Positions 928-4,824 of a stretch of DNA of 10,660 bases are shown piece by piece. Source of the stretch: Octopus sinensis (Eukaryota); the NCBI RefSeq assembly GCF_006345805.1, contig NW_021827366.1, positions 1 through 10,660 of the forward strand, in the 5' to 3' direction. Below the pieces are notes generated by a model. It was not told the origin of the DNA and did not search any database. It worked only from the letters and a program-made list of their open reading frames with translations. Positions within the stretch are counted from its first letter, which is position 1. The number at the start of each line of letters is the position of its first letter. Position numbers and translations under genes: made by a program.

Positions 928-968
928 AATGTACAAATCATTATAAAAAAATTTTTTTTTAAATCAAA

Positions 969-1130
969 GGCGCAGGAGTGGCTGTGTGGTAAGTAGCTTG
1001 CTAACCAACCACATGATTCCGGGTTCAGTCCCACTGTGTGGCATCTTGGGCAAGTGTCTTCTGCTATAGCACCGGGCTGACCAATGCCTTGTGAGTGGAT
1101 TTGGTAGACGGAAACTGAAAGAAGCCTGTC

Positions 1131-1171
<41 letters not shown>

Positions 1172-1397
1172 GTGTGTTTGTGTGTGTGTGTTTGTCCCCC
1201 TAGCATTGCTTGACAACCGATGCTGGTGTGTTTACGTCCCCGTCGCTTAGCGGCTCGGCAAATGAGACCGATAGAATAAGTACTGGGCTTACAAAGAATA
1301 AGTCCTGGGGTCGATTTGCTCGACTAAAGGCGGTGCTCCAGCATGGCCGCAGTCAAATGACTGAAACAAGTAAAAGAGTAAAGAGTAAAGAGTAAAG
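969..1397 (+). mobile_element. tRNA-derived SINE family A, full length
   Basis: A-box-like TGGCTGTGTGG, B-box-like GGTTCAGTCCC, central domain CCTTGTGAGTGGATTTGGTAGACGGAAACTGAAAGAAG, internal (TA)n/(TG)n and an (AGAGTAA)n tail. Three other copies occur in the window. Confidence 0.92.
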
Positions 1398-3300: not shown

Positions 3301-3689
3301 GGAGGCGCAATGGCCCAGTGGTTAGGGCAGCGGACTCGCGGTCATAGGATCGCGGTTTCGATTCCCAGACCGGGCGTTGTGAGTGTTTATTGAGCGAAAA
3401 CACCTCAAAGCTCCACGAGGCTCCGGCAGGGGATGGTGGTGATCCCTGCTGTACTCTTTCACCACAACTTTCTCTCACTCTTACTTCCTGTTTCTGTTGT
3501 ACCTGTATTTCAACAAGGGCCGGCCTTGTCACTCTCTGTGTCACGCTGAATATCCCGAGAACTACGTTAAGGGTGCACGTGTCTGTGGAGTGCTCAGCCA
3601 CTTACACGTTAATTTCACAAGCAGGCTGTTCCATTGATTCGGATCAACCGGAACCCTCGTCGTCGTAACCGACGGAGTGCTTCCATTCC
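3301..3689 (+). mobile_element. tRNA-derived SINE family C, full length and young, with 11-bp TSD
   Basis: A box TGGCCCAGTGG, B box GTTTCGATTCC, many retained CpGs and a short (TTCCA) tail. Direct repeat ACCAGTGAACT at 3288-3298 and 3690-3700. Confidence 0.9.
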
Positions 3690-3775
3690 ACCAGTGAACT
3701 AAGGTAACTCGCCATATGTTTCAAGCTCCATGCGGAGTATTCCAGCAGATCCAGGATTCTTCTTCATGCTCTTTT

Positions 3776-4158
3776 TTTCTTTACTCTTTTACTTGTTTCA
3801 GTGATTTGACTGCGGCCATGCTGGAGCACCGCCTTTTATCGAGCAACTCGACCCCGGGACTTATTCTTTGTAAGCCCAGTACTTATTCTATAGGTCTCTT
3901 TTGCCGAACCGCTAAGTGATGGGGACATAAACACACCAACATCGGTTGTCAAGCAATGCTAGGGGGACAAACACAGATACACAAATACACACATACATAT
4001 ATACGACGGGCTTCTTTCAGTTTCTGTCTACCAAATCCACTCACAAGGCTTTGGTCGGCCCAAGATGCCACACTTGCCCAAGATGCCACACAGTGGGACT
4101 GAACCCGGAACCATGTGGTTGGTAAACAAGCTACTTACCACACAGCCACTCCTGCACC
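3776..4158 (-). mobile_element. SINE family A, full length
   Basis: Reverse-complement match to 969-1397 over its whole length. A small internal duplication CCAAGATGCCACAC lies at ~4059-4092. Confidence 0.92.
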
Positions 4159-4163
4159 TATAT

Positions 4164-4169
4164 AAAAAA
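4164..4169 (-). terminator. Pol III terminator (T6) of the tRNA-Met gene
   Basis: Six T on the minus strand, 2 nt after the discriminator base. Confidence 0.85.
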
Positions 4170-4171
4170 TC

Positions 4172-4265
4172 TGCCCCAGGTGAGGATCGAACTCATGACC
4201 TTCAGATGGCTCGACGATAACTTTGGATTATGAGACTGACGCGCTGCCTACTGCGCTACCAAGGC
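4172..4265 (-). tRNA. tRNA-Met-CAT: Elongator tRNA-Met(CAT) with a 21-nt intron (exon 1 4265-4229, intron 4228-4208, exon 2 4207-4172); possibly a decaying copy
   Basis: Spliced sequence GCCTTGGTAGCGCAGTAGGCAGCGCGTCAGTCTCATAATCTGAAGGTCATGAGTTCGATCCTCACCTGGGGCA (73 nt) folds as a cloverleaf with intact A and B boxes. Anticodon CAT is at 4232-4230. G1-C72, T54 and the U31:U39 pair are typical of eukaryotic elongator Met rather than initiator. Confidence 0.92.
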
Positions 4266-4280
4266 CTATTATTCTATTAT

Positions 4281-4568
4281 TCTTTTCTTTTTCTTTCATT
4301 TGTTTCAGTCATTTGACTGTGGCCATGCTGGAGCACCACCTTTTTAGTCGAGCAAATCGATTCCAGGATTTATTCTTTGTAAGCCAAGTACTTATTCTAT
4401 CGGTCTCTTTTGCCGAACCGCTAAGTTACAGGGACGTAAACACACCAACATCGGTTGTCAAGCGATGTTGGGCGGGGGACAAACACAGACACGCAAACAC
4501 ATACACACACATACATACATATATATATTATATTATATATATTACATATATAAACGATGATGATGATG

Positions 4569-4615
<47 letters not shown>

Positions 4616-4789
4616 GATATATACATATATACGATGGGCTTCTTTCAGTTTCTGTCTACCAAATCCACTCACAAGGCTTTGGTCGGCCCGAGGCTATAGT
4701 AGAAGACACTTGCCCAAAGTGCCATGCAGTGGGACTGAACCCGGAACCATGTGGTTGGTAAGCAAGCTACTTACCACACAGCCACTCCT
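4281..4789 (-). mobile_element. SINE family A, full length, with expanded internal microsatellite
   Basis: Reverse-complement match to 969-1397; (TA)n, (CA)n and (GAT)n core at 4490-4630. Confidence 0.92.
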
Positions 4790-4824
4790 ATTATTACTAT
4801 TATTATTATTATTATTATTATTAT

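Follow-up and report, generated by a model that had tools for sequence, protein, structure and literature searches.

Introns in animal tRNA genes have been recorded in a small set of isoacceptors. In published surveys, introns outside the genes for Tyr, Ile-UAU, Leu-CAA and Arg-UCU are "essentially absent" from animals, the survey's database being dominated by vertebrates, insects and nematodes. A companion survey treats introns in Met-CAU genes as a kingdom-specific pattern (PMC12168002), and broad reviews agree. The first-pass annotation of the locus described here started from the same picture, in which the introns of animals fall mostly in Tyr, Leu-CAA, Ile-TAT and Arg-TCT and those of Met genes are a plant pattern, and in this it matches the surveys (PMC12168002). 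The papers on tricRNAs do not mention Met, and our search of the literature on tRNA introns in molluscs, invertebrates and cephalopods found nothing relevant. The genome paper on Octopus minor reports a tRNAscan-SE run and gives no intron data. In sum, the splicing mechanism is known and the isoacceptor is known from plants, while an animal family that joins the two appears to be undescribed in the literature that was searched. Such a family seems under-reported: its members are plain to see among public sequences and would appear in the output of any tRNAscan-SE run.

The rules by which tRNA introns are recognized in animals have been worked out on fly and human TSEN substrates. They comprise a proximal C-G pair, a bulge that is invariably of 3 nt and a spacing of 6 nt between the proximal C and the end of the exon (PMC6614914). 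The helix between anticodon and intron must be neither unpaired nor over-tight, and the same trends hold in human cells (Schmidt et al., PMC6614914). According to a 2023 review, the proximal pair alone is conserved; otherwise the enzyme measures from the mature body of the tRNA (PMC10485636).

The locus studied here lies in a 10,660-nt stretch of Octopus sinensis DNA, the whole of which is called the window below. Its tRNA gene shares with the metazoan Tyr-GUA, Ile-UAU, Leu-CAA and Arg-UCU genes, which are served by TSEN and RtcB, a short intron between positions 37 and 38 and the Pol III architecture. Shared as well are the C32:G pair, the 3-nt bulge, the 6-nt spacing and the weak anticodon-intron helix. 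The window gene differs in its isoacceptor, Met-CAU, which is off the published animal list. It belongs, moreover, with a group of Met genes whose introns begin almost invariably with AUC, a feature that published TSEN rules neither require nor explain.

The elongator tRNA-Met(CAU) genes of plants offer the same isoacceptor with an intron at the same 37/38 position, whereas the exons of the window gene are of animal type and near-identical to what we take to be the elongator Met sequence of fly and human. Two plant-like Met genes recovered in the same scan as the relatives described below (L061 and L063) are unlike the window gene in that their introns are long and lack the AUC start. The resemblance to archaeal BHB introns is confined to the 3' half, where a helix closed by the proximal pair is followed by a 3-nt bulge. 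The helix has three pairs and an A35·C mismatch (A35 against C16i) rather than four pairs, and there is no clean 3-nt bulge on the 5' side. The precursor thus falls outside the strict definition of the archaeal motif (a 4-bp central helix with two 3-nt bulges) because A35 faces C. As with other eukaryotic substrates, its recognition probably relies on the ruler provided by the mature domain.

Anatomy of the gene and its predicted splice sites

Positions 4172-4265 of the window are a real elongator tRNA-Met gene split by a standard 21-nt tRNA intron (Table 1). The Rfam tRNA covariance model matches the minus strand from 4265 to 4172 (42.6 bits, E=1.9e-06), with 23 nt inserted into the anticodon loop. 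ARAGORN with introns switched on reports tRNA-Met(cat) c[4172,4265], i(38,21), with the intron ATCCAAAGTTATCGTCGAGCC between 37 and 38, which is exactly where the first-pass annotation had placed its 21-nt insert. The default ARAGORN run on the window returned no tRNA, because introns are ignored in that mode. On the gene strand the order is GCCTTGGTAGCGCAGTAGGCAGCGCGTCAGTCTCATA, ATCCAAAGTTATCGTCGAGCC and ATCTGAAGGTCATGAGTTCGATCCTCACCTGGGGCA, followed by GA-TTTTTT, and the intron sequence has a single occurrence in the window.

Table 1. Features of the tRNA-Met gene and of the neighbouring SINE copies (window coordinates; strand relative to the window as presented)
Feature	Position	Strand	Basis
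Elongator tRNA-Met(CAT) gene, 94 nt with intron; mature tRNA 73 nt	4172..4265	(-)	Rfam RF00005, 42.6 bits; ARAGORN -i
5' exon, tRNA positions 1-37; anticodon CAT at 4230-4232; C32 at 4234	4229..4265	(-)	ARAGORN, constrained fold
Intron, 21 nt, ATCCAAAGTTATCGTCGAGCC, canonical 37/38 position	4208..4228	(-)	ARAGORN; ends fit family consensus AUC...GAGNN
Intron G17-A18-G19 pairing with C34-U33-C32; G19:C32 is the proximal (anticodon-intron) pair	4210..4212	(-)	Constrained fold
3-nt bulge C20i, C21i, A38, with the 3' splice site inside	4207..4209	(-)	Constrained fold; criterion of PMC6614914
3' exon, positions 38-73; A49 (4196) mispaired with C65 (4180)	4172..4207	(-)	ARAGORN, constrained fold
T6 RNA polymerase III terminator, 2 nt past the discriminator base	4164..4169	(-)	Sequence
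SINE copy A, head 8 nt beyond the terminator	3773..4158	(-), strand of the tRNA	Repeat comparison
SINE copy B, probable target-site duplication 4267-4282 / 4789-4805	4283..4788	(-), strand of the tRNA	Repeat comparison
Third SINE copy	~960-1390	(+)	

The gene carries the marks of an elongator: G1-C72 in place of A1-U72, T54, a TTCGATC T loop and an anticodon stem without GGG/CCC. The contrasting set is provided by initiators from related loci (L105, L053 and L089), which have A1-U72 and an anticodon arm of the form GGGCCCATAACCC. In its A-box and B-box regions the gene is identical to high-scoring genes of the family, and the internal boxes are accompanied by the downstream T run expected of a Pol III gene. 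In the rest of the window the Rfam tRNA model found no further tRNA at its threshold, and the sub-threshold Rfam matches in the window were rejected as microsatellite or hairpin artefacts. An unconstrained fold gave no cloverleaf (z-score 0.24) and is uninformative on the feature.

When the cloverleaf is imposed as a constraint, C32 pairs with G19i, U33 with A18i and C34 with G17i, while C20i, C21i and A38 are left unpaired; the call of a 3-nt bulge assumes a stem closed by the apposition U31·U39, as in the mature tRNA. The first-pass annotation had proposed the same contacts, namely C32 paired with the G three bases before the 3' splice site, C32-U33-C34 paired with intron GAG, and C, C and A38 bulged at that site, and the constrained fold reproduces each of them. 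The features named by the published rules can be read off this fold. The intron lies between 37 and 38, one nucleotide 3' of the anticodon; position 32 pairs with the third-last base of the intron; and the 3' splice site lies in a 3-nt bulge. The distance from C32 to A37, the end of exon 1, is 6 nt, and the helix is a moderate one of three Watson-Crick pairs followed by an A·C mismatch. As modelled, the window precursor conforms to every published cis-rule for metazoan TSEN substrates. Its reading as such a substrate is supported by the anatomy and by the strong conservation seen across the family.

Three points were absent from the first-pass annotation. The mature domain does form a cloverleaf, with a mismatch between A49 and C65 at the base of the T stem. 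Its acceptor stem contains three G·U pairs, including a tandem G·U. Finally, the predicted 5' splice site falls within a weak A-U helix and shows no bulge in the constrained fold.

The course of events that such an anatomy would allow is the usual one. Transcription by RNA polymerase III would be directed by the internal A and B boxes and end at the T6 run, and the ends of the precursor would then be trimmed. After removal of the intron, an RtcB-type ligase would join the exons, and it may also close the 21-nt intron into a circle. A tricRNA may therefore be a product of this gene, a reasonable expectation by analogy with work in fly, worm and human.

Intron-bearing relatives in public sequence collections

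Relatives were sought with a pattern for the anticodon arm of animal-type elongators interrupted by an insert of 6-36 nt, GTCAGTCTCATA-N6-36-ATCTGAAGG, in which exact arm sequences were required. The collections scanned were public viral contigs, bacterial and archaeal genomes, and metagenomes, and matches were then filtered for a valid cloverleaf. The metagenomes gave at least 120 stretches. The matches on viral contigs proved to be a non-tRNA repeat only, and most of those on genome contigs are not tRNAs either. A coincidental, conserved non-tRNA sequence, GTCAGTCTCATAAAGGATTATCTGAAGG, on large viral and human-gut contigs accounts for L001-L006, L015, L019 and similar matches, which were set aside. 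The genome collection yielded one true match, L010 (FXLX01000321.1), a tRNA-Met with a 17-nt intron at 37/38 on a 1-kb contig of 0.55x coverage in the species-representative assembly of a 'SUP05 cluster bacterium'. Over 900 nt this contig matches another from a JGI metagenome (L073) at about 96% identity, and it is therefore most likely DNA of a host animal that contaminates a bacterial record.

Among the matches listed, at least 82 animal-type elongator-Met genes besides the window copy carry an insert at 37/38, making 83 in all, with at least 65 distinct introns of 13-36 nt and at least 20 exon haplotypes. The ends of the 65 introns listed are strongly conserved. At the 5' end, position +1 is A in all 65, +2 is T in 64 and +3 is C in 60. 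At the 3' end, position -3 is G in 64, -4 is A or G in 64 and -5 is G in 52. Positions -1 and -2, the interiors and the lengths vary freely in the same set. A terminator of at least four T that starts within 9 nt of the discriminator is present in 82 of the 83 genes listed.

The helices of the family are very weak and MFE folds of the anticodon arm with its intron were unreliable across it, and for that reason pairs were counted directly. At least three contiguous anticodon-intron pairs, counted from the proximal pair, are possible in 51 of the 65 introns listed, against about 1.4 expected from shuffled introns. The window intron, with three of the four helix pairs, is typical of the family. 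A control for the 5' end is provided by the non-animal-type Met genes that the same pattern retrieved: they have G at -3 in 20 of 20 cases and no fixed AUC start, and the AUC signal is therefore not forced by the search pattern.

The AUC with which the introns begin stands again at the start of the 3' exon (window 4208-4228, loci L010-L130), and in the coral subfamily described below the repeat reaches 7 nt (ATCTGAA). It may be the trace of an origin by local duplication, or it may reflect the need of a modification specific to the precursor.

The nearest group to the window gene among the matches listed consists of L077, L039 and four further loci, all from assembly JAAUYG01, together with L028, L081 and L087. 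The intron of L077 equals the window intron in length and is identical to it at 14 of 21 bases; that of L028 has the first 10 bases in common with it. A reverse-transcriptase fragment from the JAAUYG01 loci matched unnamed sequences only. The repeats of the window are absent from every relative contig that was fetched, and none of these contigs is therefore from a close relative.

The family spans many unrelated marine and host-associated samples, and for one subfamily a taxonomic label can be given. On contig L070 an intact linker histone H1 of 191 aa lies about 1.1 kb from the tRNA-Met gene. The named best matches of this protein are all stony corals: Orbicella faveolata (Cnidaria, Scleractinia) at 88% identity, followed by Desmophyllum, Porites, Montipora and Pocillopora. 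We therefore assign to corals the subfamily of L070, whose introns are 13-14 nt long and of the ATCTGAATTAGAA type, the label being limited to this one subfamily. No database record matched the L070 H1 protein exactly, and no tRNA was found within 10 kb of the H1 loci fetched from the genomes of Orbicella, Desmophyllum and Porites. Another contig, L095, encodes a PRP8 that is closer to the human than to the yeast protein, which is weakly informative.

The relatives sit in dense tRNA clusters. In L028/L081, for example, Arg-TCT, Ile-TAT with an intron, Gly-CCC and Met with an intron are found together, and L107 has nine tRNAs in 3 kb. On the loci fetched from the matches listed, ARAGORN called 257 tRNAs, 105 of them Met(CAT). 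These divide into 97 elongators with an insert, 8 initiators without one and no intronless elongator, the last count coming from a biased sample, as the contigs had been preselected for an intron-bearing copy. The exact intronless core, GTCAGTCTCATAATCTGAAGG, likewise had no occurrence in the 793 kb of fetched loci. The initiators are of metazoan type and intronless. The other intron-bearing tRNAs on the fetched contigs are chiefly Tyr-GTA (7 of 7), Ile-TAT (4 of 4) and Leu-CAA, which is the classic metazoan set. At least 12 contigs among the matches listed have two or three elongator-Met genes, and the intron is present in every copy. This argues that the intron is the rule for elongator-Met genes in the organisms of the relatives, where decoding of Met is likely to be splicing-dependent.

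A second type of Met-tRNA gene (GTCCTTGTAGCTCAGTTGGCAGAGC...) was seen at L017, L026, L057, L079, L093, L116, L120 and L127, in which the T loop carries an insert of about 10 nt besides the 37/38 intron. It resembles the non-canonical, multi-intron tRNA genes of some algae.

Probable inheritance of the intron and condition of the window copy

We consider it probable that the window gene belongs to a family of elongator tRNA-Met genes in animals, widespread and probably ancient, that have a canonical, protein-spliced intron at 37/38. Taken alone, the window gene would offer an intron of ordinary TSEN type, if in an unusual isoacceptor, and a copy that may be decaying; the pattern across the family is more useful. 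The scan indicates that elongator tRNA-Met is a fifth intron-bearing tRNA family of animals, and one common in marine invertebrates. If this were confirmed on named genomes, the ancestral metazoan set of tRNA introns would be extended, and Met decoding in those animals would be splicing-dependent. The AUC...GAGNN ends provide a conserved motif for testing whether tRNA introns persist as guides of precursor-specific modifications.

The condition of the window copy is a separate question. Its mature tRNA sequence is shared by none of the other 82 genes listed. It differs from the nearest exon haplotypes at positions 5, 49 and 67, in each case by a CpG-to-TpG or CpG-to-CpA transition, and the CpG observed/expected ratio of the window is 0.62. 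U5 is found in seven, and U67 in two, of the other genes listed, whereas A49, and with it the A49·C65 mismatch, is confined to the window copy among the 83. The score of 42.6 bits compares with 51.5-59.1 in intron-bearing relatives; it is 9-12 bits below L077, L028 and L039 and up to about 16 bits below the best copies listed. The gene is also solitary, lying outside any tRNA cluster. From these features the window copy looks like a lone, slightly degraded paralogue, and the chances that it is still expressed and functional seem to us about equal either way.

The most serious rival reading accepts the family and holds that the window copy is a silenced, decaying pseudogene among SINEs, with no contribution to the Met-tRNA pool. 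The copy by itself would then say nothing about Met decoding in this animal. The deficit of 9-12 bits against its closest listed relatives speaks for such decay, as does a mismatch at the base of the T stem that none of the other listed genes shares. Transitions at three CpG positions in a window with a depressed CpG ratio are the signature of methylated, inactive DNA, and the gene stands alone with two SINEs within 10 nt on either side where its relatives are clustered. However, both promoter boxes are intact, as are the anticodon arm, the two ends of the intron and the T6 terminator; U5 and U67 are each found in genes that look normal in other respects; and one mismatch with some G·U pairs need not abolish function. 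We would put decay of this kind slightly short of an even proposition.

Whether or not the copy is active, its intron was probably inherited rather than gained in this lineage. The first-pass annotation had offered lineage-specific gain and retention as alternatives, and of the two retention is the better reading, given what appears to be an old and widespread intron in many unrelated samples. Gain in cephalopods or molluscs would agree with the absence of Met-CAU from published lists of intron-bearing animal tRNAs and with the lack of any report for molluscs in the literature searched. It does not account for the 82 or more other animal-type genes with a like intron, one of them on a stony-coral contig, in which the same insertion site and the same ends recur across at least eight exon haplotypes, many intron families and unrelated samples. 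Nor does it account for the residual similarity that the window intron keeps to introns on contigs devoid of the window's repeats. We regard such a gain as very improbable. Common ancestry of the family is what we infer from this recurrence; the shared intron ends could instead reflect a common constraint.

Retention can be taken further. The elongator-Met intron may be ancestral to animals, cnidarians and bilaterians alike. Vertebrates, insects and nematodes would have lost it, and in many phyla of marine invertebrates, the present one among them, every elongator-Met gene would carry it. We think a history of this breadth unlikely, and mention it for its consequences. All internal AUG decoding in those animals would depend on TSEN splicing, and the AUC, as a mimic of A38-U39-C40, would mark an intron-dependent step of anticodon-loop modification. 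Intron-dependent modification steps are known for Tyr, Ile-UAU and Leu-CAA.

The last reading, that of a chance tRNA-like sequence or a tRNA-derived repeat with a random insertion in the anticodon loop, draws on a window full of tRNA-derived SINEs, and we dismiss it almost entirely: 70-71 of the 73 exon positions agree with the consensus of the family, the insert sits precisely at 37/38 and has the family's AUC...GAGNN ends, the SINE heads are unrelated, a terminator is present and the Rfam match has an E of 1.9e-06.

Flanking SINEs and other features of the window

The repeats of the window look octopus-like. Exact look-ups of three ORFs of the window gave no match, and neither did a homology search with an ORF that spans a SINE, probably because a stretch encoded by a microsatellite saturated the search's word index. 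A tRNA-derived SINE of about 400-500 nt is abundant in the window. Its copies resemble the tRNA gene in having Pol III-type, tRNA-like heads, and those next to it are on the same strand and directly adjacent. They differ from it in length, with a conserved body and tail over their 400-500 nt, and in sequence, the heads showing no kinship with tRNA-Met. The probable target-site duplication round copy B, TATTATT(A)CTATTATT, is about 16 nt long, and copy B landed in an (AAT)n run that already adjoined the tRNA on its upstream side. As the duplication lies in the run beside the tRNA, the tRNA is older than the insertion of copy B. Both flanking SINEs are no more than 10 nt from the gene; their closeness might reflect integration targeted to tRNA genes, or plain repeat density.

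A stretch at 3301-3375 on the plus strand resembles, by eye, the tRNA-like head of another SINE family (GGCCCAGTGGTTAGGGCAGCGGACTCGCGG...GGTTTCGATTCCC); it gave no match to the Rfam tRNA model even at E<=1. Positions 1-114 hold a near-perfect inverted repeat of about 34 bp that forms a long hairpin, with sub-threshold matches to several miRNA models; it is probably a small transposon or foldback element. Tandem repeats occupy 2040-2700 (three units of about 240 bp), 8190-8600 (three units of about 180 bp in (GAA)n/(AAT)n) and 9230-9470 (units of about 35 bp, gagaacgtgtaggtgaaagagag...), and long (TA)n and (CA)n microsatellites fill positions 9780-10660.
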